A DNA stretch of 64,000 nt, taken from the NCBI GenBank assembly GCA_010909165.1, contig MU008182.1, forward strand, positions 744,001 to 808,000, in the 5' to 3' direction. Each line of letters starts with the position of its first letter. Within the stretch, counting starts at the first letter, position 1. The DNA is from Anthoceros angustus. Lineage: Eukaryota; Plantae; Anthocerotophyta. A program made the translations under genes and the position numbers. This document shows positions 23,942 through 49,189 of this stretch, piece after piece. The notes beneath the pieces were generated by a model. It ran no database searches, was not told the DNA's origin, and saw only the letters and a program-made list of their open reading frames with translations.

Positions 23942-24251
23942 TCAACTCAGGAGAACCGAAGGTGAAGGAGAAGTTCTCACACAATGGATTCTGTCCAAGC
24001 TTCTTGGCCTCCGATAGGAACTAAGCAACAAAGAAGAGCACACGACGCTGACAAAGCCATTGCTGATCCTGCAACCCACGGCGGAAGACAGAATCTTGTG
24101 AAGTGTACAAAGCACCAGATGCCAGAGGGATACCAACCACATTGTATCCCAATGACAACGTATAGTTCACCCTAATTTGCCTAAATGTCTTGCGCGACAA
24201 GTCAATTGCTGTAATAACGTCCTCCAAATTGTTTCGCATGAGGACGATATC
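23942..24251 (-). pseudogene. HMA5: C-terminal fragment of a P1B heavy-metal ATPase (HMA5-like, TM7-TM8)
   Basis: DIVLMRNNLEDVITAIDLSRKTFRQIRVNYTLSLGYNVVGIPLASGALY / RFCLPPWVAGSAMALS / VSVVCSSLLLSSYRRP, with two frameshifts. No upstream HMA exons are adjacent. Confidence 0.85.
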
Positions 24252-24622
24252 ACGGATCTGTACTAACTAGCTCGAAGATATGTACTAGCTCGAAGGCACT
24301 CAAAATTCCGGAACTCTGGGAGTCTCCAAGCTTGCGTGATTGGCAATCGAGCCAGATCAGATCAGTCGACGAAACCCGGATCATTCAGTTCAATTTCATC
24401 CAAGCAGGGCAAAGGTGAGCACAGCTTGGGAATTGCTTCTTCGATGAAGAAGGAGAATGCCACGACCTGCCATGCCATTGACTCGCCTCCTGTTCCGGCT
24501 CTTGCCAATGAGGTGCCCTGCCAAGAACAAGAAAGAGAGCCCCTGCCCGACACCTTGCTGGCACCAAGAATTTCAGGAAGCGAGACAAAGGAACAAGCAA
24601 GCACCACCACCGGGCCCAGTTA

Positions 24623-25443: not shown

Positions 25444-27826
25444 GGACCAAGCAACGACAACGAGCAGTTTGCCGGAGCCTGTCAAGCGAGGCGAAGTTCA
25501 ATCTACATACACTGCACATTTAGACTCTTTCTGGCCTTTATCACACTTTGCATGGCTCAAAATCTCCGTATCAGCAAATCTCCAGCTTCTAAAATGGTTT
25601 GTCTTGAAAAAGATACTCCACTGAACATATCTTAACCCTAAAAGTCATGCTCAACGTGACGGTGTTGGGCACAGCATGCTCTTGGTGTGTGTCCGCAAGC
25701 TGCTACTGGTGTTACACAACACGCCATCGCCATTGCCTAACAAACAATAATCGGTTTTATCCTTGCAACTACTTCAACGTCTCCGCCACAGCCTGCGGCA
25801 TGGTCAGCCGCACAGAAATCTGCACATGGTGCCGCGCGCTAGTGTTGAAGGACCTCCTTCAACAAAGCGAGCATTGCTTGCTTCTCCAAAAGGGAAAGGA
25901 GTAACAGGTCCAAACTAGACAACATTGCCAAGATATTGTATATCTGCAACAAAGGGTCCTTCGGTCCTTCCCCCTTAATTGAAGACCGAGAGTTCGGCGA
26001 AGCTTCTTGATGCCTCGGAGCGCTAGCTCCATCAATTGATGAAGCAACATATTTTGGTTGTTGATGAAGAGAGGTCTTGATCAGGTGAAGAGACAGAGAG
26101 GATTGAGCACGCTCGAAGGGCAAGTCAGGGAAGGCTTCATTTTTCCTTGAATTCCGTCCTTTGGACATTCGACAACAAGAAGAGGGTCGTTTACAACGAG
26201 TATTACTAACTGACAAGGTAAACAACTTGGTGTACTGCAGCAGAACCTCGGGCAGTGAAGACGTTAGGCGTGAGGAATCTTCACTGGAGCTAGCACAGCC
26301 AGCTACATCTACTATGGCGACAACAAGGGTCAAGACTCCTGTTTTGGCAGTTGCTCCTGCCGAATCTGGGGAGGTGGAGACCGAGCCTCAGGGCCTCCAT
26401 TCAGGTGATGACTCGTCGGGTTGATCCTTGGACTCATGGGCCTGAGCCTACAACGGTTGATTAGAGACTCATGACTCCACCGCACCAACGGATCCGGATG
26501 CTGTCACGGCAAGGAGTCATATTCAAGGCTCTCCTCTGCAAAAATGTTAGGTCAGTTTCTAACCCAACCCCGTCCTCTAAGGCCGACAGTCAGTTATCGC
26601 CCTTTGTCCAACCCTCCCCCCTAATAATGCCTTTAGCACGTCGTGCTGATGCTGTATCTCCTCCTCACCCTCCCCATGTCCCTGCATCTGAGTTTTCCAA
26701 TTAGTTAAGGGCAAAAATGTTATGGAATCCTTTTATAAGGATCTGGATGAGGGCACTAGTAAGAGCAGTTTTTCCTTGGTTGTTTGTCTTTTTTGGGCAC
26801 ACTAATCTGACTATTGTTTATTTTTTGTGCATGATGGGCTAAAAGGTTGGTTGAGCTTTCTAAACCCTAAACCAACCTCTTAACAAGAACTCGTGAGCGG
26901 TCGTGGAGTTACAGCCACGAGCATGAGAGGGGGAAGGACGGCCTCCACCCGCCATGGACAAATACCCTAAACCCTAAAGAGAATGCACGAGCGAAGAAGC
27001 AAGCGGAGGCGGGATGGAAGGAAGCGACGGAAGGGGCGGGACGGAAGAAGCGGAGTCGGGGTGGGAGGAAGTAGCAGCGGAAGGAAAGAAGAGAGAACTG
27101 AGGGCAAAGCCTTAACCTAAGGCTGGGTGACTGGGTTCGCATGAACCCGAACCCGGAGAGTGAAGTCCGGGCCGGAGTTGGGGTGCACGGTTCACATGTG
27201 CCCCGATGAGAGCCCGGATTTTCCATCTTTTACCTGGTATTAATGGTTTACGTGACCGGTTGTGCCTGTCGGTCCGTAGAAACTCCAAACCTTAGTGGTC
27301 GGGAGTACTTTTGGCTAATATTTAACGAAGATAATATGTATTAAATTTTAATATAAACTTTTTAATTTTAATTTTAATTTTTTTTTAAATCCTTGAAATA
27401 AATATGTTAAATTGGCCTAAAGAAATTTGTGAGTGAGGTCTGCCTCAGCTCATTTCTTAAGTAATTACGCATATCCCTCTCTATAACATGTAATTTTCTC
27501 ATGGTGTCAAATATATTAACCTCACGCTCCCTCAAAAATGTGTGTTAGACCTCTATTGCTACCTGCACTTGAGTTGAAGAAAAAACACCTGAATGGGAGC
27601 AGCCACAACATCATCACGAACATCAGCATCCTCTGCTTCATGACCATCATTTTCATCTTCAATCGGAGGAAGGATAGATGCCCAAATCAATTCGTCCAAA
27701 GGATGAATGAAGTCTAGAACCCATATTAGAACCTCTTGTGTGAGCAAGATTGAAAAGGGCACCAGCCAACCGGCGCCCTCCCCTTTGTTCCTTTGTGGTG
27801 TTGACTAACAATCGTGTGATTGGCAG

Positions 27827-27922
27827 CAACTCAAGGATATTAAAGTTCTATCAAAACTTCCAGATGTCTTCCAACATTTCATTTTTGAGGTTAATAATTG
27901 GAAAGGACTGGAGGACGAGCAG
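27827..27922 (+). pseudogene. 5' part of the interrupted beta-class DNA methyltransferase exon (upstream of the LTR insertion)
   Basis: CTAAC branch point and GGCAG acceptor at 27826, then 32 open codons QLKDIKVLSKLPDVFQHFIFEVNNWKGLEDEQ ending in the TSD AGCAG. It continues in frame at 40130. Confidence 0.7.
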
Positions 27923-29310
27923 TGTGGCGGGACTTTTGCTGATGGCCAGCCGGGCGCGCACAATCCCGTGTCGTTGTAGGAAGGAGTCCGTTCCCAAGGG
28001 AATGATAGGCCTGCATCGCGTTTCGTGTTTCTACCGTCCTTAGCGCTGCTCGCCTCAACACACATACTCCTAATCGCCACAACGTTTCACCGCAGCCGGT
28101 ATGGCCAAGCGTTTAAGGACCAAGGCCAGTCGATTGCTCACATACATCCTCACGCATCCGCCCTTTCCTCTCTCCTCACGCTACACTCTTCGCCTTAGAA
28201 AAGACGCTGGTTACGCAGATCGACCTCCTCCGCTGCTCCGGGCCTCTCCGTCTGTGCTCTACACGCCTCCGAGTTCCTCCGCCACGCGGCCTCGGTCGGA
28301 TCGCTTCGGACGAGCACGGTCATCACCCCACCTTCCCCGCACACACCACAACGCTAAGTCCGTCACGTGACCTTGATCAATCTCCCGAGTTCCTCCGCTG
28401 CTCGCCGACTCAGACTCACGTTAGCAAGAAGACTCACAAAGGTCTGCAAGAACGCGCATCAACACCAAGAGAAAGATGCTTTACTAGAGCACCATATCGC
28501 GCCCAAGGTGGCGCCTTTATTACACCCCCTATTCGAGCCGATAGCGCCGATACCCTAATCGGCCGCCTACCACCTATCCCCTATCTCCTTCGCCGACTGG
28601 CTGGGAAGGTCCTGGCCCCGCCGGAATGGGTGGTCCAACTTCGTCCCGACAGCCAGTGGTGCACCCAATCGGATGATCCGTGAGGCGGGCCCTCCTCTCC
28701 CGAATCGCCGTTGTTACGGCGGCGGTTCGACAACCGCTACCACGACGTCATCCTCCCCTCCCTCCTCCCAATCTCCTGTTATACTGGCGGTTCGACAACC
28801 GCTACCACGACGTCATCCTCCCTCCTCCTCCTTGGCCGCTTGTGGAAGTAACCGGGCTGAAGGCGCTGTCCGTAGAATCGCCAGGGGTCTGCATGGCTTA
28901 CTCGACCCTACGCCCGCTTACTCGCCTTACGCTGCAGCTCGTGAATACCGCTATAACGGCCTGCAAGGTTACGGCCCCGCCTACTGCATGCCCGACCTCC
29001 ACTGTGGCCCACGTGGCGCCGCCTCGTCATCCTCACGCCCGCCTCCTAGGTCGCGCATTTATCCTATTTTGACTGGAGTGGGTTCCGGACTTATCCTATT
29101 TTGACACAGGTGGGTTCGGACTTATCCGTTACTCGGCGTAGTCCGAGCTTGCCATAGTGGTACCGGGTCCGTTGTTCACTCCGAGTCCGAGTATACTCCG
29201 AGCCTCGTCCGGCGCTACCCCAATTTATTCCTCCTTTCCGCCTTATTTATCCTTCAATCCTAAAAACAAACCCTACTTATTTCTTAACTCCTGGAAGTGC
29301 ATAGCCCACA
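27923..29310 (-). repeat. 3' LTR of gypsy element 1
   Basis: Homologous to 38869-40124, TG...CA termini, adjacent PPT. Confidence 0.9.
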
Positions 29311-31562
29311 TACTCCCTTCTCATCTCACATGCCTCGCCAACACTAAGCATGATACTTCTTCACCCGCCACCCGCTCACCCGAGTGGGCAATCTCCATCT
29401 AGCCGTCAGAATGGACGGACCCGTTGTCATATACTTGCACCACTTGGTACGGACCCATCCATCTCGTGAAGTTTGCTCGAAAATGCATGTCGACTATCAT
29501 AAAGGAGGGCCAGTCCCTTCCTTTACATACTCCCGATTCATGATCGGCGATCGTGCCAAATCTTCACCGGTTTTGCACCAATGCATCTTCACCGAGCTTC
29601 TTCCCCGTCCTCCGTAGGCCGACAAACCCCAAGAGTCGCCGAGCTGGCTTTCCTCCTCCTCCCTTCCATCATTACTCGAAAAGTGGGCACTTCAAACTCA
29701 CCGGCATTACGGAGAGTGTCCGAGGTCAAGAAGCAGGTCCGTGTGGTCACCGCCGTCCGAACGCCCACAGGCGGATGGCGGGTATCCTACCATGGGCGTA
29801 GTTCATCGTGAGTTTATTCAGATCCCGCAGATGAGCCCATTTGTCTTCTCTGTCACCCATTGGCCTTAGGATTGTAGGGTGCTCATGATTGATGCCGAAA
29901 TACTCCGTCATGGCGGCCACCACATCATTAAGGAAATGGGTTCCCCTATCACTTACCAACCGCAGCGACATCCGCATCGGGTTATGATGTTCTCGACAGA
30001 ATTTGGCCACGATTTGCGGAGTCCGTTCTTGTCGCCACCGCCTCTACCCACCGGTGCGAGTCCGCCACCGTGATGTATCTCCTTTGTGTGTGTCTTGTCG
30101 AGGTCAGAGTAGGTCCAACAAAGTCAATACCCCACTTTTCGAAGGTGCGGTGCCAATATCGGTACTAGCGGCCACCGTGTCGCCGGGTTGGCTTTCCGAT
30201 CCGCCGACAAGCATCACACTTCTTCACAAACCGGTGGGTGTCCCCATACATTGTTGGCCACCAAGATCCCGCCCAAATCTTTTGGTGGTGACTGTCTTTG
30301 CGTAGTGTCCACCCCAATCCTTCGTGCATTCCTCGACGACCGCCTCCTGCTCTCCGGCAAGTACCTTCGCTCTACCGGCCCTAATTTGAACACACACCGT
30401 TGTACATTCTCAAGGGTCGAGCATAGTGCACGAATGCCTCCTCCGTCCACGAGTCGATTTTCGGAAGCTCCATTCCCAGGTACCGCCTATTTCTTCGTAG
30501 GTTTGACGACCGCGCCTCCCTTCTCCGCTCGCTAAGGCCGCTCGTAGCTTGGGGTTCGGTGGGCTCCGGTTGTACTTTTATCGCGGCAACCAATGTCTCA
30601 TCCGGAACGCATCTTCCCGATCTCTCAACACCGCCTGCTTTCAATCGTGATGAAATCGCATTTTGGTGCCGCCTCCCTTGTCTTGTTTCCACTTCAACGT
30701 GAACTCCTCGCAACAATATCCACCTTGCTATCCGTCCGACAGTCCGCCTTTATTCACCGGATGCTTCAACAAGAAGTGGTCTACATAGAACACAAACTCA
30801 CCGGTAGTAGGTAGTGTCGAATTTCTTGACAAGATATACCATACCCGGCTTCGGCCTGTAGTTGTGTATTTTCGCGTGGGTGAGCCGTCAGTAGTATACG
30901 GATAATCCGCTTGTCGTCCTTCCGCTCAAGACTACTCCGATAGCAAAAGCGGACACATCTACATACACATGAAATTTCTGCTCGATCCGGTCCTCTTAGA
31001 ACCGGCGCTTACCAAGGTGTTCTCAGAATCAAAGGCCTCCTCTCGCCTCCGTGACTGTGTCCAAACCTCCTCCTTCCGCAGAGTTCGCCAACTTAGCCCT
31101 CTTCGCAAAGTCCTTAATAAACCGCGTAGTATCCCACCATTCCTGTGAAACCTCTCACCTCCTTTAGGTCTGCGGGGAGAGACTGGATGACCGGACCTTG
31201 TCCCGTCCACCTCGATTCCCCGCCGACACCCGATGTCCCAAAGAAGATTCCCTCCGTCATTCCAAAGTAGCATTTCTCGGTGTAGGCTCAATTGAGTCTC
31301 CTGCGCCTCAAGCACCTTCTTAGATGCCCAAGGTGTTTGTCCCGCTCCCCATGCACACAAAATCATCCAGAATATCTCCATGAAGTCCCTCGAAGTCACC
31401 AAGACGTTGGTCACCATACGCATGAACGACTCGGCCCGGCCATCCCAAAGGCACTTCTCTTGTAGGCAAACGCACAGTAGGTGAAGGTCGCCTTGTCCCA
31501 TCACTCCCTTAGGTGCAATTGGTTATATCCGAGTAGCCATCCAGAAGGAGTAAGTAGTCCGT

Positions 31563-33205
31563 CCACCACCTTGTCCAAAATGTCTCACGAATGGCATCGG
31601 AAGTGGTCCTTCTCCGCTATGCGTTGAGCTTCCTCCAATCTTGGCATACCCGAATTTGGCCGCTTTCTTGGGAACCACCACACCCGACCCACTCACTGCT
31701 GACGATGGGGAAAATGATGTCTGCCTCGGTACTTATCAAGGACCTCCTTCACCTTGATCGAATACTTGGGGTTGAGCTTGTATTGGATTCGACCGCACCG
31801 CCTCCGGCTTCAAATCGATCTTATGCTCTCCCACTTCTTCTAATGCCCTTCATGTCCGTGACCTTGAAGGCGAACACCTCAAACTCCCCAAGAATGCTTT
31901 AGTCCTTCCTTCAGTCCGAGGCATGCCTTTCTTAAACTTCGTGAATTTGGCCGGACCTCCACTTCTTCCACGCCGTCCGGGTTCACTGCCTCCTCCTCTC
32001 GCCTCCGTGACTGTGTCCAAACCCCTCGCCTCCTCCTGGGATCGCCCTCTCGCATCCCCATTCTCAAGAGCTCGTCGGAGGTGAATCGTGTTACTCCTTC
32101 GATGTCCGCTTCCTTGGTCCGACTCACTGCCTCCCCAGCCGGGTCCGACCTCCTCTTCACTTCCTTCCTCCATTTGTGGCGACTCAAAACAATCAACCAC
32201 TTCCGCCAAAGGCATCCCCAGAGTCCATCTCCTCCTCGGACCGGATCTTGGCGAAAGGGTACGCCTCCTGAACTATCTTGTTCGTCGCCGGTGGAGTCCT
32301 CCACGAGGTATACCCTTCTAGTGCTCAGCTTCCCACAATAGGTGTCCTTGCTCCGTGATAGCAACCTCCCTTCTCGCACCTTAGGGTCCCACCACCTTGT
32401 CCAAAATGTCTCACGAATGGCATCGGAAGTGGTCCTTCTCCGCTTGCTGAGCTTCCTCCAATCTTGGCATCATGAATTTGTCTGGCTTTTGGGAACCACC
32501 ACAATCGGCGCGACCCACTCGTTGACGATGGGGAAAATGATGTCCGCCTGTACTTATCAAGGACCTCCTTCACCTTGATCGAATACTTGGGGTTGAGCTT
32601 GTATTGTCGGATTCGACCGCACCGCCTCGGCTTCAAATCGATCTTATGCTCTCCCACTTCTAATGCCCTTCATGTCCGTGACCTTGAAGGCGAACACCTC
32701 ATAAAACTCCCCAGTGCTTTAGTCCTTCCTTCAGTCCGGAGGCATGCCTTTCTTAAACTTCGAATTTGCTGGCCGGACCTCCACTTCTTCCACGCCGTCC
32801 GGGTTCACCGCCTCCTGCTCGCCTCGGCCCAAACCCCTCGTCCTCCTCGGGATCGCCCTCTCGCATCCCCATTCTCAAGAGCTCGTCGAGGTGAATCGTG
32901 TTACTCCTTCGATGTCCGCTGGTCCGACTCTTCACTGCCTCCCCCCGGTCCGACCTCCTCTTCACTTCCTTCCTCCGGCCCGTTGTGGCGTTTACTCAAA
33001 ACAATCAACCACTTCCGCCAAAGGCATCCACGGTAGTCCATCTCCTCCTCGGACCGGATCTTGGCGAAAGGGTACGCCTCCTGAACTATCTTGTTCCGCT
33101 GGAGTCCTCCACGAGGTATACCCTTCGGTAGTGCTCAGCCCCACAATAGGTGTCCTTGCTCCGGTGATAGCAACCTCCCTTCTCGCACCTTAGGGTCCCA
33201 CCACC
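31563..33205. repeat. Tandem duplication in gypsy-1 pol (units of 826 and 809 bp) bounded by CCACCACC microhomology
   Basis: CCACCACC occurs at 31563-31570, 32389-32396 and 33198-33205. Confidence 0.85.
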
Positions 33206-36200
33206 GGCTTGAAGTGAATCTCCTTCCTTCCAAAGTGTAGTGTCTGGCCAACCCACCATGGCCGCCCAAAGAACACCTCATACCCTAATGGTCCGGCCGG
33301 TTTGATCACAACAAAATCCAGCTTTGTAGGGTGCGCTATGGTGGCCAAGACTCTGCTAACTCCTCACGGATCTCTTCTTGACATGTCCGCCATTCTCGAG
33401 TCTTCGTTGAGGGTTCAAGGATGTGAAGCCCAATCGTGCTTCGTGATGAGGTTGACTCGGACCCGTGTCCAACGGTACATCCTTGATGATACATCCAAAT
33501 CTCCACTTGTACCATCGGGCGCCTGGGTCCGTATGGGACACCACCCTCACTTCCACTGTATACCCTTCCGGCTTTGGTGCTCCGAGGCTGGTTTCCCTAA
33601 CGGCCCGACGGACCTCCGGTATTTCGGGTTATCCTCGGCCCGAAGACACAAGGTGCCGATTCATCATCGTCCACATTAAAGGCGAGGCTTCTACCCCAAT
33701 CGAGGATCCTCGGCCCTCATCCTCTCCCGGTCACTGTTCGGTATTCTCCGGATGCTTGCGCATTTCCTCCGCAACATCTCGGTCACCTCCGGACTACGTC
33801 CGGTGGAAATCGGCGGCCGCGGAGGCACCGCTCCTTCTCCTGTCTGACGAGAACTTCCTTCGGTAATCCCTCCCAGAGCTGCGTCCACCTCCTTCATGGC
33901 CGGATCCTCTCGGTATTTCCGCTTGATTGCCTTCCTCGGCCCGTGACCTCCTCTTGTTCTTCTTCAATCGGCGCCTTTCTCGCCGCTCCTTCCTTCGGCC
34001 ACGAGTAGACACCTCCAAGATTTCCACGCCCGACTCCTTCCTTTCTACCCCAATCGAGGATCCTCCGGCCCTCATCCTCCCGGTCACTTGTTCGTATTCT
34101 CCGGATGCTTGCGCATTTCCTCCCGCAACATCTCGCACCTCCTGACCACGTCCGGTGGAAATCGGCTGCCGCGGAGGCACCGCTCCTTCTCCTGTCTGCG
34201 GAGAACTTCCTTCGGTAATCCCTCCCAGAGCCGCCCGCCTCCTTCATCGGTCGGATCCTCCCGGTATTTCCGCTTGATTGCCTTCCTCGGCCCGTGACGC
34301 TTCTCCATCTTGTTCTTTCGCGCCTTTCGCCGCCTCCTTCCTTCGGCCACGAGTAGACACCTCCAAGATTTCCACGCCCGACTCCCTTCCTTTCGACCCC
34401 CACCGCACCTTCTTGTTCTTTCCATCTCGCACTGGAATCTCTTCCCACTCCGCCAATCGAGCATCTTCGACTTGCAGTCTTAGGAGGTGGCGTTGGTGGT
34501 CGGGTTCTTGGTGGCATATCGTACCGCCTTGTGCGGGGTTGGGACATAGCGCATCTCATATATGCCCACCGCTTGCCGCCACACTCAAGTCCCCATTACC
34601 CCGCCTGGGTACGGACACGCGTTGGAGTAATGGCGATTCCCAGCCCAGCACACTACCGACGGAGGATACGAAGGCTCCCATGCGGTCTTTGCATCGGTGG
34701 GGCCCGTTGTATTGACGGACCTCCGGACTACGTCCGGTGGAAGCTGCGTCGCCGTCGCGGAGGCACCGTTCCTTCTCACATCTGGGAGAACTTCCTTGGG
34801 TAATCCCTCCGTGAGCTGCCGTCCAGCCCTCCTTCATCGGTCGGATCCTCTGCTATTTCCGTTTGATTGCCTTCCTCGGCGTCGTGGCGCTTCGATCTTG
34901 TTCTTCTTGGCGCCTTTCTCGTCGCTCCTTCCTTGACTCTGATGACACCTCAAGATTTCCCCGACTCCCTTCCTTTCGACACCACCGTACCTTCTTGTTC
35001 TTTCCATCTCGCGTACCTCACAGGGATCTCTTCCCACTCCATGGAGCATCTTGACTTGCCGTCTGTACGGTCTTAGGAGGTGGCGTTGGTGGTCGGGTTC
35101 TCCGCTTGGTGTGGCATATCGCCGTCCTTGTCGGGGTTGGGACATAGCGTCTTGCATGCCATGCCACCTTGCGATCGCCACCGGGCTCGAAGTCCCCATT
35201 ACCACCTCGTTGGAGTACGGACGCGTTGGAGTAATGGCGAGATTCGCGGTTCCAAGACCACGGCCGTCGGAGGATACGAAGGGCTCCCATGCGGTCTTTG
35301 CATCGGTGGGGCCCGTTGTGGACCTCCGGTTGGCGGATACATGGTTTTGGGATATCGCGCCCCGGAGGGGCTTCTGCACTGATAGGCCTCTTCCCATTGC
35401 TCCTCGCCTCCTCCTCGTATTCGTAGTCCACTTGATGCACCGGCCTTGAGGCGCTTGATTTCGAATGGCCGTGTTGCCGCACGGCACACCGTAGATGCTC
35501 GCACCGTAGTCGGTGTTTTCCGCCTTGGCCCCTTAACTGGTTTATCGCTGTCCTCTACTCTCTTTATCACTTTTTCCAGTCCTCCTGCACTGCCACCTCC
35601 TTGAGGGAGTCGGGTCCGGAGCTTCTGACCGGCTGGTGTCACCACCTCCTTCTTACCCCGCTTTTTAGCCGGGCCTTCTTGCTCTTCTTCTGGGATACTC
35701 TTCCTCGCTAGAGACCTCTCCTTCTTCTGACGCTCCTCCTCCAAGACACCTCCGATTGGTCTTCCTCCTCCTCAAGACTCTTCCTCCTGAGTCCGAACCC
35801 CGCTTCTTCTTCTTCTTGCCTCCTTGAGCGGATTTCTTTATCCTCCGATGTAGCGATTCCTCGTAGTTTTCGGCCGCCTCGACCGCCTTGCCCACGCCCT
35901 TCTCGGCCAGGCAGGACGTGCTCGCCATGGGTTTGGCTAGACCGGCCGAACCACCGCTTGCATCGTGGTATGGGTTGGATGCCGATCCTCGGGCATAGAA
36001 CCGATGTACGAGCCCATTTCTCCTTCTTCCTCGCCTGATTTTCCAACTTTGATAATACATACCCTCCCGGTCGATCCTCGAAACCGCTCTAAGAAGGCAT
36101 TTTCAAAGCTTCAAACGAGGCGGGTGGGGCATTCTCCTGGTCGGTACTTTCTCCGATACCATTGAGCACCGTCCCTGAGAACCCCTTGAAAAGCTGGATG

Positions 36201-38868
36201 AGCTCGCCTCCTCTCCGCTTGGTGTGGCATATCGCCGTCCTTGTCGGGGTTGGGACATAGCGTCTTGCATGCCATGCCACCTTGCGATCGCCACCGGGCT
36301 CGAAGTCCCCATTACCACCTCGTTGGAGTACGGACGCGTTGGAGTAATGGCGAGATTCGCGGTTCCAAGACCACGGCCGTCGGAGGATACGAAGGGCTCC
36401 CATGCGGTCTTTGCATCGGTGGGGCCCGTTGTGGACCTCCGGTTGGCGGATACATGGTTTTGGGATATCGCGGCCCGGAGGGCTTCACTGATAGGCCTCT
36501 TCCCATTGCTCCTCGGCCTCCTCCTCGTATTCGTAGTCCACTTGATGCCGGCCTTGAGGCGGTTGGACTTCGAATGGCCGTGTTCTTGGCACACACGGCG
36601 TTCGCCGTGGTCGGTGTTTTCCGCTCTCGGTCCTTACACAGTTTATCGCGGGTCCTCTACTCTCTTTATCACTTTTTCCGGGTCCTCCGGACACACTACC
36701 TCCTTTGAGGGAGTCGGGTCCGGAGCTTCTCGGACGGTCTTGGTGTCACCACCTCCTTCTTACCACCTTCTTTTAGCGGGGCTTTCTTGCTCTTCTTCTT
36801 GCGGGGATACTCTTCCTCGCTAGAGACCTCCGTCTCTTCTTGGACGGGCTCCTCCTCCGAAGACACCTCGATTGGTCTTCCTCCTCCTCGAAGACTCTTC
36901 CTCCTCAGTCGAACCCGTTTCTTCTTCTTCTTGCCTCCTTGAGCGGATTTCTTTATCCTCGATGTAGCGATTCCTCGTAGTTTTCGGCCGCTCGACCGCC
37001 TTGCCCACGTCCTTCTCGGCGGCGGGGCGTGCACAGCCATGGGTTTGGCTAGACCGGCGCGAACCACCGTACCGCTTGCATCGTGGTATGGGTTGGATCG
37101 ATCCTCGGGCATAGAACCGCTCGATGTCTGAGCCCGGCTTCTCCTTCTTCCTCGCTTGATTTTCCAACTTTGATAATACATACCCCTCACTGGTGATCCT
37201 CGAAACCGTTCTAAGAAGGCATTTTCAAAGCTTCAAGCGAGGCGGGTGGGGCATTCTCGGTGGTCGGTACTTTCTCCGATACCATTGAGCGTCCTCGGAG
37301 AACCCCTTGGAAAAGCTGGATGAGCGTCGACTCCCTCTCCGTTGAAGTTGGCTTTGGACATGAAGTCCTCCACAAAGGTCTCCGCATCCGCTCCTTCTTC
37401 CCTCCGAATATGGAGTACGCTTGTTTGGTCGAGGTAGGGGCCATGGTCACGCCATCGATGGGTTAGGCGTCGCCCTACCTTCTTCCGTTACGCCCCTCGC
37501 ACCTGACTGCCTTGGTCCGACACCGACCACGTTCTCCTCCGATCGACGGTGCTCTCTCGTTGGGTTTGACGCCTCCTCTCCCGGCTCGGAGAGCACGCGA
37601 GGTGACCACGTCCGATCCTCCCGACGGTTCACTCTTGACCGCCGCCGACCGCCACGCATTCACTTACCTTCTCTTCCTAAGGACGCACTTGACCACGCAC
37701 GATTTCATTCCCGAACGCGCCAAAATGTGGCGGACTTTTGCCGATGGCGGCGCGCGACAATCCCGTGTCGTTGTAGGAAGAAGTCCTCCCAAGGGAATGA
37801 TAGGCCCGTTTACGCGTTTGGTGATTCCTACCGCCCTTAGCGCCTGCTCGCCTCAACACACACATACTCCTAACTACTCACAACGTTTCACCGTGACAGC
37901 CCGGTATGGCCAAACGTTAAGGACCCGTCGTCGTGATTCACATACATCCTCACGCATCCCCTTTCCTCTCTCCCTCACGCTACACTCTTCGCCTTAGAAA
38001 AGACGCTGGTTACGCCCGACCTCCTCCCGTTCCGGGCCTCCGTCCGGCTCTACACGCCTCCCGAGTTCCTCCTCCGATCGACGGTTCACTCTTGACCGCC
38101 GCCGACCGCGGCTCGAGCACGGTCACCCTTCCCCGCACACACCACAACGCTAAGTCCGCCACGGACCTTGATCAATCTCCCGAGCCGCCGTGCTCGCCAT
38201 GGGTTTGGCTAGACCGCCACAACCACCGCATCATTTGCATCGTGGTATGGGTTGATGCCGATCCTCGGCATAGAACCGCTGGCTCAGAGCTTCTCCTTCT
38301 TCCTCGCCTGATTTTCCAACTTTGATAATACATACCCTCCCGGTCGATCCTCGAAACCGCTCTAAGAAGGCATTTTCAAAGCTTCAAACGAGGCGGGGCA
38401 TTCTCCTGGTCGGTACTTTCTCCGATACCATTGAGCACTGTCCCCTGAGAACCCCTTGAAAAGCTGGAGCCGCCGCCTCCTCTCGCTGAAGTTGGCTTTG
38501 GACACGAAGTCCTCCACAAAGGTCTCCGCATCCCGCCTCCTTCTTCCCTCCGAATATGGAGTACGCTTGTTTGGTCGAGGTAGGGGCCATGGCCGCCATC
38601 GGTTAGGCGTCGCCCTACCTTCTTCCGCTGCCCCTCGCACTCTGTGACTGCCTTGGTCCGACACCACCACGCCTCCTCCTCCGATCGACGGTGCTCTCTC
38701 GCTGGGTTTGACGCCTCCTCCTCTCCTGAGAGCACGCGAGGTGACCACGTCCGATCCTCCCGACGGTTCACTTGACCGCCGCCGACCGCCACGCATTCAC
38801 TTACCTTCTTCCTAAGGACGCACTTTGCAAAGACCACGCATCGATTTCATTCAAGAACGGCGCCAAAA

Positions 38869-40124
38869 TGTGGCGGGACTTTTGGCTACCGGCCGACAAT
38901 CTGTCGTTGTAGGAAGAAGTCCGCTCCCAAGGGAATGATAGGCTGCCACTGCTGCTTGTGTGATTCTACCGCCCTTAGCGCCTGCTCGCCTCAACACACA
39001 CATACTCCTAACTACTCACAACGTTTCACCGTGACAGCCCTATGGCTAAACGCTTAGGACCCGCTCACCTCAGATCGCTCACATACATCCTCACGATCCG
39101 CCCTTTCCTCTCCTCACGCTACACTCGCCTTAGAAAAGACGCTGGTTACGCAGGACCTCCTCCGCTGCTCCGCCGGCCTCCGTCCGGCTCTACACGCCTC
39201 CCGAGTTCCTCCGGCTCACGCTGCCCTCCGGTGACCGGCCCGGACGAGCACGGTCACCCTTCCCCGCACACACCACAACGCTAAGTCCGCCACGGGACCT
39301 TGATCAATCTCCCGACTGCCGCGGACTCAGACTCACGTTAGCAAGAAGACTCACAAAGGTCCGCAAGAACGCGCATCAACACCAAGAGAAAGATGCTTTA
39401 CTAGAGCAAACTCTTATATCTGCGCCCAAGGTGGCGCTTTATTACACCTATTCGAAATGATAGCCACCGCAGATACCCTAATCGGCCCCTCCCCTATCCC
39501 CTATCTCCTTCACGGATCGGGCTGGAAGGTCCCGGCCCGCCTCGGAATGGGTGGTCCAATCCCCCGAGTGCACTAATCGGATGATCCGAGGCGGGGCCCC
39601 TCCTCTCCCGGAACTCGTCGGGTTCTGCGGCATTCGACAACCACCATCATCCCCACGGCCCCTCCTCCTGGCCACAGCCGCTCGGAAGGCGCTGGCCGGG
39701 AAGGGGGTCCGTATGGCTTACTCGACCCCACGCTGCTACTCCGCCTTACGCCGGCAGCCAGGCGTGAATACGCCTGCGGCCTCGGCAAGTACGGTCCTGG
39801 CCTCGCAAGGGTCTGGCACGCCTCTGCATGCCCGACCTCCACTCGGGTCACGTGGCGCCGCCGTCATCCTCACGCCTCGCCTCCTAGGTTACTTCTGGCG
39901 TACTTATCCTATTTTGACTGGGTCCGACTTCACATCCGGCGTAGTCCGGAGCTTGCCATAATGGTACCGGGGTCCGTTGTTCACTCGAGTCCGAGTATAC
40001 TCCGAGCCTCGTCCAAGCGCTACCCCAATTTATTCCTCCCTTTCCGCCTTATTTATCCTTCAATCCTAAAAAAAACAGAAACCCTACTTATTTCCTAACT
40101 CCCCAGGGAAGTGCATAGCCCACA
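38869..40124 (-). repeat. 5' LTR of gypsy element 1 (an extra partial copy at about 37724-38185 belongs to a tandem duplication)
   Basis: TG...CA termini, adjacent tRNA-Asp PBS. Confidence 0.9.
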
Positions 40125-40129
40125 AGCAG

Positions 40130-40863
40130 CGTGCTTTGGCGGACAAGGACCTTGTGGAAGGATTGGAGGTGTTCATTGTTCCATCCTCAGAAAAACAGGT
40201 ACAATACCAAGTGGAGAGCATAGATGTTTTAGACATGCGAGGGTTTCTCACAGGACGGAAATACACACTTCTGGTGATGGACGTTCCAAGGGGATTTCAA
40301 ATCGGGCCAATGGACAAACGAGTGGACAAGCAGATGATGGATACTGTTTTGCAGAGCTTTGTTGAGAAAACCACTAGCGATGAGCTGAGGATGATTGTAA
40401 TACATGGTGTCAAGAAGGCACACACTGTTAGGGAGTCCATGCAGAAGTGGAGCAGGAAAGGGGGCTTGGTCTCATTTGTGTGGGACAAGACGAACATGAA
40501 CAATGACAAGGGTGGATTTGAAACCGTGGAGTACGTGACACTGGGTTGGGGAGTGAAAAATGTGTGCACAAGGGATAGGGTTGCAACGATGCCAAATGCC
40601 ATGCACGCTACTTTGAACAATGGGAGGTCTATCATCGCTCATGACACTGTTGTAAGAAACAGGTGTACATGTCACATGACAAGTTGGTGGTATGCTCATA
40701 TCAGAGGCCTCTGGGGCTAATGATGAAACTTATCAAAACCTTCTCCGAAAAGGGAGATTGGGTTTTAGATGCTTGCTCTGGCAGTGGGACAACTTTATTG
40801 GCAGCCCTATTGTGCGGATGAAATTGTATCGCTATTGAGGCTGACTTGAGGTGTGCAGGATAA
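40130..40863 (+). pseudogene. Beta-class N4-cytosine/N6-adenine DNA methyltransferase (N6_N4_Mtase-like) catalytic domain, inactivated
   Basis: Motif order IV then I: KYTLLVMDVPRG (DPPY-like), FVWDKTN, ETVEYVTLGW. After a frameshift near 40660: SYQRPLGLMMKLIKTFSEKGDWVLDACSGSGTTLLAALLCG*NCIAIEAD, with a premature TGA at 40819-40821. Confidence 0.85.
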
Positions 40864-41070
40864 TTCCACAACGGATCCATGGGTATGAGGTTCTGCCAGA
40901 TGCTGACGAACAATTGACCTTCGAGGCCCACCGCAGAGGACTTGCGCAATTGTGGGCAAAGGAAGATGTATCAGCGAGAAGAACTCTTTGAAAGCGCAAG
41001 TGGTTTCTTTGAGTTCTCGTCGAATGAAGACCAAAACTTGAGTGTTCTTCATGTAGGGCTCCAAACCCTT

Positions 41071-41478
41071 TGTAACTGGCCCAAAGATCAAGTTCTATGC
41101 CCAGAGATCTTCCAGACATAGTCTTGGTTTCTCGAAGGAGCTCACGAAAGTGGTCATTGTGCCTTTGGTCTGCGGATATATAAGGCCAGAACGGTTTCCG
41201 CTTTGGCCTATTTCAATTGAGCACGTTTCTTGTTCATGTAACCACTATTTACCCTATTTCTACCTATCCGCTAATTAGGATTAATATTCCTATCTATCCG
41301 CTAATTAGGATTAATTCTACTTAATGCCTACGCTCCTAACGCTACATAATTAACCAAGTTTCTTATACACGCTGCTTTATGAAACGGGCATCGTCGCTAA
41401 TCGGCCCGCCGGCTCACTCTTTGGTAGCATGCTTGTGCCCCTGCTTGGCGGCAGCGTGTTCCGCCTCCCGCCGCAACA
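41071..41478 (-). repeat. 3' LTR of gypsy element 2
   Basis: Matches 48763-49184. Both LTRs share an internal CTATCCGCTAATTAGGATTAAT duplication. Confidence 0.92.
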
Positions 41479-44400
41479 TCCTCCCCACTTAAGAGGCTCG
41501 GTCCTCCGTGCCTCGATCCGCCGGCTTAGGCGAGGAAACCGGGCAAAAATCTTGGCTCCCAAGGGTCAAGAATCGGGTTCGTGGCTCCACCCAACAAGGT
41601 AATCTGATCCCTGCTTCAAGCTTGCGAGCTCGTTCTGAAGGATTCTGCTTGGAAGGAGGAGAGGTCTGCACGCCGGTAGGCTGGTCGACGGTGATGGGTG
41701 GAAACCGATGGTGGTGTGGATCGGGATGGGGAAACTGGAAGAAGGGAATGGAGTGGCCGGAGGATCGAGGAGATGGGCCGGGAATAACAGCTTCAACATA
41801 CTAACATGGAAGGTCCGCACATGCGCCACTTGGAAGGTCGAGGTATAAGCCACAAGATTCACTTGGCGAAGATGGGGAAGGGTCCCGCAAAACGGTATGC
41901 GAGTTTGTGATGGGCCGGATCGTGTGGGTACTGTGGGGACGGACACGTAACTGCACTCTGCCCCACCGCATATGTGACCTCACGGCGTTGTTTGTTCTGA
42001 TCTTGCGCCACTGCCTCAGGCCGCAAGTAGATTCTTCTTAGCCTGGCCGACTGTGGTATATGTCTTCACCGCGGCACTCCTCCACTTTTCTGCTACTGCT
42101 GGCCATAATCCTCGAGGTGGTGGGTTGGCTCCATACAAGAATTTGAAGGGTGAGGCACTGCAAGATGCTTGGAGGTATTGTAAGCAAACTCCAACATAGG
42201 TCTGTGTCCTCCCATAATCCTTGCTTCTCCTGCATAGTGACGCAACATGTCTTCTAGCACTTGTATTCGCGGATCGACCACCTGATTCGGATGGCGGTGG
42301 TGGACAGCTCGATGAATGCCGAGGGTCTCTGAATGTCTTCCAACCTGCTGGAATTTCGGATCCTCGTCCAAACGATGTCTATGGCATCCATGTAGCTCAA
42401 AATCTCGCGGACGAAGATGCCACTGGCCGTGACCTTGAATGGACGGTATAAAATGACAAGATTAAAGTCCGGCCCATGACGACCCATATGGCGTCCTTTC
42501 CAGCTGCTGCACGTGACAAAGTCCATAGAACGGATCGAATCGCCTTGTATGTGTAAGGGTAACAACCCGGCGATTGATTCGGTTTTGCCTTTTGGCGAGA
42601 CACACGAACCCACTGGATACGATCCCCGCCGCATGTTGGTCCAAGAGAAGTGTGTCTTCACGCCATACGCCTTATCTATTCCGAGATGTCCCGAGATGGG
42701 AGAATCGCAAATCGTGCATGATTCCCCGCTTAAGTTCCATCATGTGTCCTCGATAACCACCGCCTTACGGTAAACGCACGCATCCTTCAGTTGGTAGGTT
42801 TGCATAAGGGCTGTCGGAACTCCCGCTGTTGCATCCTGGACTAACTGGTCGTATATGGTTTGCAGGGTAGGATCATCTGGAATCGCATCACGGACCGCCT
42901 GGATGGTTTCGGACTGTGATTTCATCGTGGTCCGGCCCTCGCCGAGAGAGCATCCGAATCAGTATTTGCCGAGCTGCGAGGTACTTGATTTCCATGTCAA
43001 AGTCTCGCCAAGTACTCGCCAGCCAACCGCCTAGCGTTGAGATTTGGGCTTGAAGAAGTGTTGTAGCGACGTGGTCCGTGTGAACTACAAACCTCGTCCG
43101 AGGAGGTAGTGGCGCCACACTTTCGTGGCATGGACGATCGCAAACATCTCCTTGTCGTGGCAGGTGGTAATTTAATTGTGCCCCGGAGTTTGTGAGACTC
43201 GTGAGGCTATCACCTCCCTTGCGAGACAAAGATCGCACCAATGGCACCATCTCGATGCATCTGTGTAGCGTAGGTTCCCCTGCTGGTCGGCCATCGCGAG
43301 CACCGCCTGCTCAAGGCTACCTTCGCCTCAAGGCTCGGACCGCCTGCCACCGGAACTCCCCGGGTGGATCGCTTGAGGGCTTCGCCAAAGGAAGAGCAAT
43401 TTGATCAAGCTCTTGATAAACCTCGATAGAAGCCCGCTAGCCCCAGGAAGCCCCTTAGTTGGGTGATGTCCTTGGGAGCGCCACCAGCTGCCACAGAGGA
43501 GATCCATCACGATGCCCTTGGCACTAACGATGTGTCCAAGATACTCAACTTCTTCTCGCATGAAGGTACACTTGCTCCTCTTGGCCAGCAGCTTGATGCT
43601 TCAAGAAGAGTGAATACCTTCCCGACGAGTTCGATGTGGGTGGCTTGGTCCGCAGAGTGGATCAAGATATCATCTAGGAAGACCTCGACCCCTTGCCTAG
43701 CAAAGGTCAAGAATGTCTTGCATGAGACATTGAAGGTCACGGGCATTTAGAAGTCTCGAACGGCATCACTACAAACTCGTAGTGACCATGCCGTGTTCTA
43801 AATGCGGTCTTGGGCTCATCCCCTCCTTGAGTCGAATTTGGTGAAAACTCGATCGCGGTCGATTTTGGTGAACCAAGCGACCCATGCTGGGTCCAAAATC
43901 TCATCGATGCGGCATCCGTAGACATTCCCTCGATGGTGGCCCGATTCAATCCTCGTAGTCGATGCAGAGTCTCCAGCCCACCGCCGTTTCGCCACCAACA
44001 ACACGGCGCTCCATAAGGTGAGGTGCTTGGCCTCACAAACCCCTTGTCCAGAATTCATCTACCGCTTTTGATCTCCTCATTTTCCACATACCGACGCGGT
44101 ATGGTTGTTGATTTACATGTGCCGATGCCTGTGCACTAGCTCGATCTTGATGGGTCTGCCTTGGTGGTAGGGCGGTGGATCCGCAAATAACCCATCACCC
44201 GCCACAGAGCCTTAAACTCTTCTGTAAGAGTTCCTCCGATTGCTTCGCCGCCTGCTCATGTGCCTCCAGAGGAACTACCCGCTCACCAGCGATGTACGTA
44301 AAGCTTCCTTGGTGGATTTATGCAAGGCACGCAAAAGGTGCTTGTCCAAGGTAAGTTTCTTCCAAAGACATACGATCCGTCTGCACCCCTAGGGTTACTA

Positions 44401-47400
44401 AGTTCTTTTCCACCTATATGAAGTTGGTGAGAATGGGCCACCACTGCTTCCCACAATCACGCCATGTGCCAAGCTTGGCATGACTATGCATTCAAAGACT
44501 TCTACGAAACCTCCGTGGAAGGTAAGAGTCGCTCGTCTAATCGCCGTCCTCACATCCTTGCTTCCTCACTGACGAATCGAGAAGTCTCGACCCGAGTGTT
44601 GGATGTGCAGCCCGCCCGCTTGGACTGAGATGTAGTGGTGGCTAGCACCGAGTCTAGGAGCGGGCAACATGTCCCGCTATGTGAACCTTTAGCTTGATCG
44701 GGACATGGGTCTTGCTACATGCATTCAAACGCAAAGACCCATTGCAAGACCTAGGGTTTTGAGCGGTGTTCGCTTCCGATTCTCTCTAAAACCACCGAGT
44801 GGTTGCTTTTGCGTGGGTTTGAGAAGAAGGGTTGGCGCGGTGGAATTTCGCCTCCTTCACCATGCGATGAAGTCCCTCCGTGAGGGCAACGTGAACCATG
44901 GTCGAGTCGCAGGTAAAGCACTTCCTTTTTCTCTCAGATTCCTTCTTCTTCTTCGAGGATTTTAAAGTCGGGTCCTTCACCGCTAATGACTTCCCCATTT
45001 CGATTCTTTGGAAGGGTTGGAGGTGCCCAAGTGTTTATACTTGTTCCGCCATAGTTCATGGCGCTTTCATGGCATCAACCAGGTGTTGGGGTTGGTCCGT
45101 TGACATCGCCAAGTTCGAATCAAGGCCATCAATGAACTTCTCCACTTTTTGTTCTTCATCGAGGCGGGAAGATCCAGTGAGTCAGAAGAACTTGTCGCAG
45201 ATTCTCGCATGCATCCTCGCCGATAGATTTTAAAACCGATACAGTCTGTGATTTGGTGTGGAGGAAATGCTCTAAGAACACTTGCTCAACATCGCAAGTG
45301 TATATGGCGCCTCCATACCCAGATCGACTTGCCCCGCTGCTCCACCAACGATACGATAACCCTCGAGCGACATGACGCAAAACCGTATGCGTTGGAGATC
45401 ATCCTTCTCACCGCCAGGTATTTCTCCATCTTGTCTGTCCAACAGAGACGCTTGAGCTTGGCACCCAAAGTCGTGGTTTTATCTTCCGCAACTCCTTGTC
45501 AAGTAGTGGGCGGGTTTGAAGGGCTCGTCTCCCTCCAACAACGACTCTTCCTTGGCCTTGGCTTGCTCCCACTCCTCATGGAGGCGTCCGCCAAGGCCTT
45601 GATGTCCTTGTTTTTCGCCCGCAACAACCTCGACCACCAACCTCTGGACTCGTCCTCACGAGCTCGTCCTACCGACTGCACGTGACCCTCGACCCTCTTC
45701 CTCATCTCTTCGCCATCCAGCCCCGGAGTGAGGGCCTCTTTCTCTGCACACCGTGGTGGTGAGGATTGCGGTGGTGGGTTCACCGGCCTTCCGACTGTGT
45801 CCCTTTGTGTTGCTCTGAACCGGACGGGTCCGCCTCCAACAATTGCGGCCGCATGGCTTGTCCCTCCAACTTGCTCGATTGTTTCGACACAACGTGCCGA
45901 GCTCCGCAGTTATTCTCCACACCACACCGGTCGACTTGGGCAAAGAACCTTGCTCAAGTGTCGCCCAAAGAAAATTTCGAGGCGGAGATCCTCTCGTTCA
46001 TGTCCTCGTTCCCGACCACCGGGCATGGCCATTCACTCCGCCTGCTGGGCCGTGCTGCCAGTGTCGGGGAACGGCCTGCACGAGGCCGGCCTCGCCTTGG
46101 TGCCGGATCATGATGTTCTCGGCCACAGTCGCCCTGTCTTCCTGCTCGATTCGAACGGTCCAGACTTCCGATCGTTTCTTCCGCCGCTTGTCGCCTCCGC
46201 TCTTCCAGGATCGGCGGGCTTGACCAATCACCGGATTTCGCCTCCTCGATTGGACCCGGCAGAGGTCTCCTACCTCCTCGACTGCACTCTTCGCCAATGC
46301 TTTCCACCGCCGGCCTTCATCAGGTGAGCTCCCGCCTCCATTTCCCTTTGTGCGCGGTCTCCCATGTCGTAAATTCCACGCAACTCCTTGCGTGATGTGG
46401 GTCCGGATGGTCTCTAATGAGCTCAAAGATTCGATCGAGATGTGAGAACTCAAGGTATGCCCAGTGTCCGAACTACCATGCGATGAAGTCCCTCCGTGAG
46501 GGCAAACGTGAACCATGGTCGAGTGCACGTAAAGCACTTCCTTTTTCTCTCAGATTCCTTCTTCTTCGAGGATTTTAAAGTCGGGTTTTTCATGCGCTGA
46601 CTTCCCCATTTCGATTCTTTGGAAGGGTTGGAGGTGCCCAAGTGTTTATACTTGTTCTCGCCATAGTTCATGGCGGCTTTCATGGCATCAACCGTGGTGT
46701 TGGGGTTGGTCCGTTGACATCGCCAAGTTCGAACCAAGGCCATCAATGAACTTCTCCACTTTTTGTTCTTCATCGAGGCGGGAAGATCCAGAGTGAGTCA
46801 GAAGAACTTGTCGCAGATTCTCGCATGCATCCTCGCCGATAGATTTTGCGAACCATCTGTCTCTGTGATTTGCGGGAGGAAATGCTCTAAGAACACTTGC
46901 TCGAACACCGCCCAAGTGTATATGGCGCCTCCATACCCAGATCGATCGGCTCCCGCTGTTTCCACCAACGATACGCATAACCCTCGAGCGACATGACGAA
47001 ACCATGCGTTGGAGATCATCCTTCTCACCGCCAGGTATTTCTCCATCTTGTCCAGCCCCGAGGCTTGAGCTTCTCGCCCCGTCGTGTGGTTTTATCTTCC
47101 GCCGCAACTCCTTGTCAAGTAGTGGGCGGGGTTTGAAGGGTCGCCTCCCTCCAACAAATCGACTCTTCCTTGGCCTTGGCTTGCTCCCACCGTACCTCAT
47201 GAGCTGGAGGCCCGCCAAGGCCTTGATGTCCTTGTTTTTCGCCGGCAACAACTCGACCACCAACCTCTTGAGGACTCGTCCTCACGAGCCCCGGCTGACC
47301 TCGTGACCCTCGACCCTCTTCCTCATCTCTTCGCCATCCAGCCCCGGAGTGGGTGCCAGGGCCGGTCTTTGCTGCACAACCGGTGGTGAGGAGGTGGTGG

Positions 47401-48762
47401 GTTCACCGGCCTTCCGACCGTGTCCCTTTGTGTTGCGGTGTTCGAACCGGACGGTAGTCTGCCCAATTGCAAGACGCCGCATGCTTGTCCCTCCAACTTG
47501 CTCGATTGTTTCGACAAGCCGAGCTCGCAGTTATTCTCCACACCACACCGGTCGACTTGGCGGCAACCTTGCCTCAAGTGTCGCCCAAAGAAAATTTCGA
47601 GGCGGAGATCCTCCGGTTCATGTCCTCGTTCCCGACCACCGGGCATGGCCATTCACTCCGCCTGCTGGGCCGTGCTGCCAGTGTCGGGGAACGGCCTGCA
47701 CGAGGCCGGCCTCGCCTTGGTGCCGGATCATGATGTTCTCGGCCACAGTCGCCCTGTCTTCCTGCTCGATTCGAACGGTCCAGACTTCCGATCGTCTTTC
47801 CGCCGTCGGTGTCGCCTCCGCTCTTCCAGGATCGGCGGGCTTGACCAATCACCGGATTTCGCCTCCTCGATTGGACCCGGCAGAGGTCTCCTACCTCCTC
47901 GACTGCACTCTTTCGCCAATGCTTTCCACCGCCGGCCTTCCGACCGTGTCCCTTTGTGTTGCGGTGTTCGAACCGGACGGTAGTCTGCCCAATTGCAAGA
48001 CGCCGCATGCTTGTCCCTCCAACTTGCTCGATTGTTTCGACAAGCCGAGCTCGCAGTTATTCTCCACACCACACCGGTCGACTTGGGCAAAGAACCTTGC
48101 TCAAGTGTCGCCCAAAGAAAATTTCGAGGCGGAGATCCTCCGGTTCATGTCCTCGCGGTTCTAACGGGGCATGGCCATTCACTCGCTGGCCGTGCGGTGT
48201 GTCGGGGAACGGGCGGCGAGGCCGAGGCCTCGCCTTGGTGCCGGATCAGGCGATTGATCTTGGCCAACCGCTGCGCCGGCCGCTCCGGTTCTTCGCTCGG
48301 ATTCGAACGGTCCAGACTTCCGATCGTCTTTCCGCCGTCGGTGTCGCCTCCGCTCTTCCAGGATCGGCGGGCTTGACCAATCACCGGATTTCGGCCTCCG
48401 ATTGGACCCGCAGGAGGTCTCCTACCTCCTCGACCTCGCACTCTTTCGCCAATGCTTTCCAACGGTCTTCATCGCCGCTGCTGGTGAGCTCCCGCCTCCA
48501 TTTCCCTTTGTGCGCGGTCTCCCATGTCGTAAATTCCACGCAACTCCTTGCGTGATGTGGGTCCGGATGGTCTCTAATGAGCTCAAAGATTCTGATCGAG
48601 ATGTGAGAACTCAAGGTATGCCCAGTGTCCGAACTACCTCGCGAGCCTCAATTCACTCCTTCGTCCGAATCGATCCTCGCTGGAATTGTTCTGCGGTTCC
48701 ACCGATTGACTCCACGCCAGGACCTCACGCTTGCGCAGTGTGATTCTCTGCTCGATACCAAA

Positions 48763-49184
48763 TGTAACGCGCCCAAGATCAAGTTCTATGCCCAGCCAGA
48801 TCTTCCAGACATAGTCTTGGTTTCGCTAGAAGGAGCTCACGAAGTGGTGCTTGTGCCTTTGGTCTTACATAGCTCGCGCCAGAACGTTTCCGCTTTTGGC
48901 CCAATAATTGAGCACGCTTTCTTGTTCATGTAACCACTATTTACCCTATTTCTACCTATCCGCTAATTAGGATTAATATTCCTATCTATCCGCTAATTAG
49001 GATTAATTCTGTAATGCCTACGTTCCTAACGTTACATAATTAACCAAGTTTCTTATACACGCGTTTCTATGAAGCGGCGGGCATCGTCGCCTAATCGGCA
49101 AGCGTCGCGGCGGCTCACTCTTTGGTAGCATGCTTCAGGCCACAGCCGGTGTCTTTGACGGCGTGTTCGCTCGCCGCCGTAACA
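48763..49184 (-). repeat. 5' LTR of gypsy element 2
   Basis: Adjacent iMet PBS and TSD. Confidence 0.92.
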
Positions 49185-49189
49185 CCCTT

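Follow-up and report, generated by a model that had tools for sequence, protein, structure and literature searches.

Introduction

Transposons with a DNA-marking enzyme of their own have so far been published for algae. In Ectocarpus, the element Sola1-1_Ec32 holds a ParB-like/methyltransferase gene opposite its transposase gene, and the authors suggest that the product binds and modifies its own element (PMC12477816). Accessory ParB-methyltransferase genes of Plavaka elements in Bostrychia and Chondrus come with inverted-repeat arrays (10.1101/2025.02.11.637652), and the survey of Iyer et al. reported phage ParB-Tls-derived enzymes in algae and no land-plant clade like the one described here (PMC4738411). 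A different kind of gene is found in Marchantia, where MpDN4MT1a/b carry TSPPY and cluster with prokaryotic N4-cytosine (N4C) enzymes (Marchantia paper). A preprint on DAM-retrotransposons (10.64898/2026.05.21.726589) was also considered and set aside, as it concerns a different methyltransferase family, in retrotransposons. In the present work, we analyzed a stretch of 64,000 nucleotides from the hornwort Anthoceros angustus (assembly GCA_010909165.1, contig MU008182.1, positions 744,001 to 808,000 of the forward strand; hereafter the window, numbered from its first letter), in which a methyltransferase gene is split by a long terminal repeat (LTR)-type retroelement. The gene is confirmed as the remnant of a beta-class amino-methyltransferase of the PF01555 type. 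It is very probably a solitary dead relic of a eukaryotic family that travels as an accessory gene of DNA transposons marked by a DUF7869 gene.

Results

One coding sequence broken by an insert

The pieces of the relic and the insert between them are arranged as follows:

27780-27826, plus strand: 3' end of an intron (pyrimidine-rich tract, CTAAC branch-like site at 27805-27809, AG acceptor at 27825-27826)
27827-27922, plus strand: coding piece A, QLKDIK...GLEDEQ (32 codons), the homologous counterpart of residues 14-45 in the homologue P0004
27918-27922: AGCAG, first copy of the target-site duplication (TSD), read from the sequence
27923-40124, minus strand: inserted LTR-type retroelement of 12,202 bp, recognized by its TG...CA ends, LTRs and TSD
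40125-40129: AGCAG, second copy of the TSD, read from the sequence
40130-40651, plus strand: coding piece B, frame 1, 174 codons, catalytic lobe (83 bits with the family hidden Markov model, HMM)
40280-40294, plus strand: motif IV, D-V-P-R-G, in piece B
40649-40657, plus strand: change from frame 1 to frame 3, placed by alignment to homologues
40654-40818, plus strand: coding piece C, frame 3 (PF01555, 35.5-37.8 bits; family HMM, 66.5 bits)
from 40699, plus strand: YQRP, in piece C
40762-40794, plus strand: S-adenosylmethionine (SAM)-binding motif I, VLDACSGSGTT, in piece C
40819-40821, plus strand: TGA at a near-invariant Arg (R-N-x-x-A-V-D in homologues), placed by alignment
40822-40863, plus strand: 13 more homologous codons, NCIAIEADLRCAG, then TAA, placed by alignment
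40845-40988, plus strand: probable C-terminal tail in another frame, ...RIHGYEVLPDADEQL..., a weak match (E 0.2)

Piece A stays in phase into RALADK... at 40130. Its alignment with P0004 is ungapped and colinear (26.9 bits), it is the top match to the N-terminus of that protein in a six-frame search of the window (E 0.002), and piece B picks up from residue 46 onward. Since piece A ends at residue 45 and piece B begins at residue 46, the insert broke one continuous coding sequence. The in-frame join of GLEDEQ to RALADK proposed in the preliminary description of this locus is thus borne out, with the phase kept and both halves colinear with homologues. Downstream, piece C shares 54.5% identity over 66 residues with another homologue, P0009.

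The beginning of piece A at a 3' splice site, also predicted earlier, agrees with a phase-0 intron found in two homologues. In contig L003 (run SRR33208241), a 112-nt GTAAGT...TGCAG stretch directly precedes the codon aligned to the window codon at 27827, in phase 0, and is missing from the otherwise identical L006 (run SRR33208242). An intron, GTGAGT...GCCAG, occupies the equivalent position in the paralogue L001. The coincidence of the intron in these contigs with the AG at 27825-27826 supports the acceptor at 27826, and its absence from L006 means that genes of this subfamily (R-type, see below) are transcribed and spliced in the organism of SRR33208241/SRR33208242. In the spliced L006 transcript, ...V-E-L-K is followed by an in-frame TAG, and motif I has degenerated to D-D-G-S-G-P-G-S. 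Upstream of the transcript, approximately 1.9 kb of additional open reading frames (ORFs) lie on the same strand. The L003/L006 gene is apparently a transcribed yet broken copy. L003 also holds Peptidase_C48 and RecQ-like genes.

Family, fold and clade

The beta-class assignment is carried by several searches. Pfam PF01555 (N6_N4_Mtase) matched 40705-40818 with 35.5 bits and 40696-40818 with 37.8 bits, above the gathering score of 26.7; the N-terminal piece by itself had no Pfam match. When the family HMM was run on all six-frame pieces of the window, the relic gave 83 bits (E 3e-24) and 66.5 bits (E 3e-19), and in the rest of the window the next match had an E of 2, with none above 5 bits. 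These E-values exclude chance resemblance. Run exhaustively against 1.84 billion representatives, phmmer with the 174-codon piece as query brought up five true homologue clusters and no more, all on Logan contigs, and a profile search of 5.8 billion proteins recovered approximately 25 family clusters at E of 1e-48 or lower. Below them there is a gap, followed by bacterial PF01555 proteins at approximately 1e-9 that match the last 50-70 residues only, as did the matches in a profile search of the PDB.

The proteins topping the phmmer list (P0001-3, 8, 10 and 11) were rejected as repeat-driven false matches. They are bacterial SpaA-repeat surface proteins, which outscore the true homologues through many weak repeat matches to query residues 9-61 and are a trap for the automated annotation of the relic.

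The same searches bear on a trivial origin of the locus, namely bacterial or phage contamination, very recent horizontal transfer or chance. By protein-language features, phage PF01555 enzymes come closest to the family among named proteins, as such an origin would have it. However, bacterial enzymes match only the C-terminal portion at E of approximately 1e-9, the relic lies amid plant-type genes and two LTR elements on one contig, and it shares a spliceosomal intron boundary with eukaryotic homologues. With chance excluded by the HMM E-values, we give this explanation practically no credence.

The fold of the family was approached through an AlphaFold model of P0009, and not of the broken product of the relic (pLDDT, the predicted local distance difference test score, of 70.8). 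Its top Foldseek matches were CcrM, MboIIA, M1.HpyAVI, rotifer N4CMT, TTHA0409, M.BceJIV, RsrI and PvuII, all of them beta-class, with E of 1e-11 to 1e-8 for the bacterial enzymes. Together with the Pfam scores, this agreement upholds the class proposed from the first inspection. In both the relic and its homologues, motif IV lies upstream of motif I, the permuted order of this class. All the motifs quoted in the preliminary description are present, WDK and EYVTLGW included; they do not share one frame, as the listing crosses the frame change at 40649-40657.

The catalytic tetrapeptide (D/N/S)-P-P-(Y/F/W) was not found in the family. Of its residues, the Asp and the second Pro persist, the first Pro has disappeared from the whole family, and the aromatic residue is missing from one of the two subfamilies that the alignment distinguishes. 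Y-type relatives have D-[IV]-P-Y, in the context A-D-I-P-Y-G-F, and R-type relatives have D-[LV]-P-R, as in L-D-L-P-R-G-L; the window reads M-D-V-P-R-G-F and falls with the R-type. The Arg is kept in five separate R-type homologues at 34-55% mutual identity and is therefore ancestral in the clade, not a product of decay. It occupies the position at which amino-methyltransferases carry an aromatic residue for stacking on the flipped base.

Two quick maximum-likelihood tree searches, for which the pieces downstream of the insert were joined with an X in place of each break, recovered the family as monophyletic with respect to the sampled bacterial enzymes (98-100 in the Shimodaira-Hasegawa-like approximate likelihood ratio test, SH-aLRT). 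In the tree with Riccia, the window joins the R-type clade with a support of 99; in the earlier tree, it falls within that clade (87-88). The branch leading to the window measures 2.3-3.0 changes per column, as one would expect of a sequence in decay. The approximately 25 clusters form a small, previously unnamed eukaryotic clade that stands clearly apart from the sampled bacterial enzymes. A kinship with MpDN4MT1 and N4CMT had been suggested; it finds no support, as those enzymes have TSPPY and the family has D-[ILV]-P-[YR]-G in a clade of its own. From the TSPPY of MpDN4MT1a/b and their clustering with prokaryotic N4C enzymes, it follows that the relic family is not of that type.

The R-type clade comprises the relic and six spliced, hence expressed, paralogues in one organism. 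It might be a selectively maintained, re-tooled branch of a family of land-plant transposon methyltransferases. We hold this idea only tentatively and consider it rather doubtful. If it were true, the R-type would have a new substrate or chemistry, or would act as a non-catalytic SAM- or DNA-binding partner, and an undescribed group of self-marking DNA transposons would exist in land plants, made up of the DUF7869 elements of ferns, liverworts and plants of the hornwort lineage.

Lesions of the relic

Removing the insert rejoins the gene and does not restore it, because other lesions persist. Homologues read ...VELKLVYTT...VVSPYQKP without a break; the window has ...DTVV in one frame and KKQVYMSHDKLVVCSYQRP in another. 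A 53-nt intron at 40652-40704 was rejected as the cause of this frame change, since it would excise the Y-Q of the conserved P-Y-Q-K-P. Further on, the TGA at 40819-40821 sits at an Arg kept in at least 90% of family members, in agreement with what was first noticed there; the GGA-TGA context fits an origin by CpG deamination, which may be how the stop arose. A second frame change near 40860 is probable from the alignment: the frame holding ...L-P-D-A-D... is the best six-frame match of the window to the tail of the Riccia homologue, at an E of only 0.2, and after 40860 the tail continuation had no match with homologues other than that of Riccia. At the other end, a TAA at 27806-27808 shuts the frame six codons upstream of 27827, with no ATG, and the N-terminal domain of 200-300 residues present in homologues was undetectable anywhere in the window by tblastn and HMM. 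The open reading frame is consequently not intact: beyond the LTR insert, it has the frame change at 40649-40657, the TGA at 40819-40821 and no start codon.

The preliminary description had read the locus as a hidden, potentially functional N4C or N6-adenine methylase of the MpDN4MT1/N4CMT kind, its frame restored by excision of the retrotransposon. In favor of this reading, the two halves are homologous and joined in frame across the insert, and N4CMT has the same class of fold. However, at least three lesions besides the insert are left, with a frame change that is certain, another that is probable, a premature TGA and a missing start codon; motif IV is DVPRG and not TSPPY; the family forms a separate clade; and the terminal branch is as long as in unconstrained decay. 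A functional enzyme at this locus is accordingly most unlikely, and the window copy would now be without function.

Transposon link of the relatives

The association of the family with transposons, anticipated from the sequence, is seen in five contigs, in which a DUF7869 gene adjoins the methyltransferase gene: L004, L008 and L009 (Y-type), L010 (R-type) and L011 of Riccia sorocarpa. Every contig long enough to show neighbors has this arrangement. The DUF7869 proteins are 34-69% identical among themselves, and two more ORF families are common to the contigs, one of them being the N-terminal or upstream domain of the methyltransferase gene. Relatives of the DUF7869 protein of L010 were found in Riccia sorocarpa (at least nine proteins, on several chromosomes), Ceratopteris richardii and Adiantum. 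Relatives of the methyltransferase beyond the window do exist, as had been foreseen, and intact ones among them.

The Riccia sorocarpa locus (CM100796.1) gives the most complete view of such a unit. A 603-residue gene joins the N-terminal domain to a methyltransferase with A-D-V-P-Y-G-F-Q, and divergent from it lies a 946-residue gene with an o599-like region followed by DUF7869. A Peptidase_C48 gene stands just beyond this pair, and a candidate 37-bp inverted pair (5258-5293 and 14518-14554) flanks both genes within 5258-14554. Unless interrupted there by an intron, the methyltransferase frame of this locus is cut short by a stop following Y-Q-K-S.

Repeated motifs were found in two other contigs. 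L008 (1-9404, ENA ERZ27311014) contains 17 copies of GATACCGGTATC, a perfect palindrome of 12 bp, placed within as well as between the genes of the element. In L009, another inverted motif recurs, CGATGTTTTGATCG with its complement. These motifs may serve as sites that proteins of the element itself bind or target.

The N-terminal domain of the relatives (200-300 residues) is conserved and has the motif G-G-N-H-x-x-R-A. Comparisons with ParB gave weak scores: HTH_ParB reached an E of 0.038 in one member, and hhalign against two bacterial ParB-methyltransferases gave an E of 0.24. A model of the domain (pLDDT 51) had no significant Foldseek match, and a profile search of the PDB gave no clear match to ParB either. 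For DUF7869, no solved structural relative was found, and a literature search found no mention of it.

The window copy among host genes

Several observations at the locus itself weigh against a transposon origin of the relic or soften the evidence for it. Neither a DUF7869 gene nor an o599-like ORF nor the N-terminal domain left a trace in the window by tblastn and HMM, which leaves the copy as a solitary fragment. The flanks of the relic were found to share no inverted repeats, and a palindrome array was likewise not found in the window. The relic stands alone among ordinary host genes; therefore, the transposon origin of this particular copy is inferred from its relatives only. The DUF7869 protein is itself a putative transposase-like protein. 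To this are added the quick nature of the tree searches, with the very long window branch, and the weak match (E 0.2) behind the second frame change.

These observations would suit the pseudogene of a domesticated host gene, one that left its transposon long ago, served the plant and then died. Such a history would account for a solitary copy without transposase relic, inverted repeats or palindromes in a gene-rich location, for the conserved spliceosomal intron and for an unusual Arg kept over deep divergence, as a new host function might require. Nevertheless, a DUF7869 gene is present in L010, which alone among the R-type contigs extends far enough to reveal its neighbors, and R-type genes are multicopy and partly broken in the one other sample carrying them. 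Domestication is, on balance, unlikely, and we favor the origin of the relic as an accessory gene of a DUF7869 element.

The inserted LTR element

The insert first noticed at this locus, with its AGCAG duplication, does split the methyltransferase frame. The block 27923-40124 starts with TGTGG and ends with CCACA, and its terminal direct repeats (27923-29310 and 38869-40124) are 82-91% identical, with indels. It thereby shows the long direct repeats, TG...CA ends and 5-bp target duplication of an LTR retrotransposon. A further LTR start lies inside it at 37727, and tandem duplications of approximately 1.13 kb occupy 35099-39321. Two tracts recognized by eye on the minus strand, a purine-rich tract at 29311-29330 preceding the left LTR and a primer-binding-site-like TGGCGCC at 38859-38865 following the right LTR, would place the element on that strand, and the strongly negative GC skew of the block agrees with this orientation. 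No gag-pol domain was found by Pfam in its six longest internal ORFs. From the LTRs, the TSD and these Pfam-negative ORFs, it follows that the insert is an old LTR-type element, probably decayed or non-autonomous.

Second LTR element and surroundings

Another LTR element lies at 41071-49184, with the TSD CCCTT at 41066-41070 and 49185-49189 and the ends TGTAAC...AACA. Its LTRs of approximately 370-420 bp (41071-41434 and 48763-49135) are 88% identical, and large internal tandem duplications (44859-46318 and 46475-47940) are 90% identical. By eye, remnants of reverse-transcriptase- and integrase-like ORFs are seen on its minus strand, with no Pfam match; Pfam found no family in ten ORFs taken from both LTR elements. 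This element begins approximately 80 bp past the last detectable methyltransferase homology, and thus there is no evidence of the gene continuing beyond it.

The neighbors of the relic are, by eye, ordinary plant-type genes in a gene-rich stretch. From ORF translations read by eye, a near-identical tandem duplication of approximately 1 kb is seen on the minus strand at 18576-20385 (18576-19346 and 19618-20385); the duplicated unit spans two exon-like ORFs of a look-alike of an eIF2B-epsilon-type gene. Also by eye, fragments resembling a heavy-metal P-type ATPase occur on the minus strand at 24024-24266 and 62969-63406, corresponding to C-terminal and middle parts; they may be gene fragments or one gene broken up by the repeat-rich middle of the window. 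Near 50 kb, the GC content drops from approximately 0.5-0.6 to approximately 0.4, and the AT-richer right part holds a minus-strand ORF of 312 codons (50657-51592) that looks like a Copia-type reverse transcriptase.

Discussion

The locus is best explained by the following history, part of it inferred. A copy or fragment of an R-type methyltransferase gene of a DUF7869 element would have landed or been left here, and then would have lost its partners and decayed. During or after this decay, the LTR-type element struck codon 32/33 of the surviving exon, making the AGCAG duplication. In the intact relatives, the enzyme presumably binds and marks the DNA of its own element, by analogy with the proposal for algal transposon genes.

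As a fossil, the relic changes nothing in the epigenome of this plant. Its value is that of a pointer to a compact eukaryotic clade of beta-class methyltransferases riding with DUF7869 genes. Intact land-plant members would make the idea of self-methylation testable in tractable bryophytes. In addition, the conserved change from Tyr to Arg raises a simple question for biochemistry, namely whether R-type proteins have remained active, acquired another target or become inactive.

Comparison with known systems

The bacterial and phage beta-class enzymes are the broadest term of comparison. CcrM, M.RsrI, M.MboIIA, M1.HpyAVI and M.PvuII have the same permuted order, with motif IV before motif I. 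Bacterial and phage enzymes also share with the family the x-P-x-x-K-P and F/C-x-G-x-G SAM-binding module, as well as the fold of the homologue model. They differ in that identity is approximately 15-20%, motif IV is (D/S)-P-P-(Y/F) instead of D-[ILV]-P-[YR]-G, and the family consists of intron-carrying genes in a clade of its own.

MpDN4MT1a/b and N4CMT are alike in being eukaryotic genes of PF01555 ancestry with the same fold class. However, they are host genes with TSPPY for which activity has been shown, whereas the relic family is transposon-linked, is known from sequence and models, and has Asp with Tyr or Arg.

The closest parallel in genomic setting is offered by the accessory genes of algal transposons. 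In both, the methyltransferase stands behind an N-terminal domain in one gene, and short palindromes are repeated within the element, in one contig (L008) in our case. In contrast to the algal elements, the partner in the relic family is a DUF7869 protein and the hosts are land plants (Riccia, ferns and Anthoceros angustus), not algae; of the whole unit, the window copy kept the methyltransferase core only.

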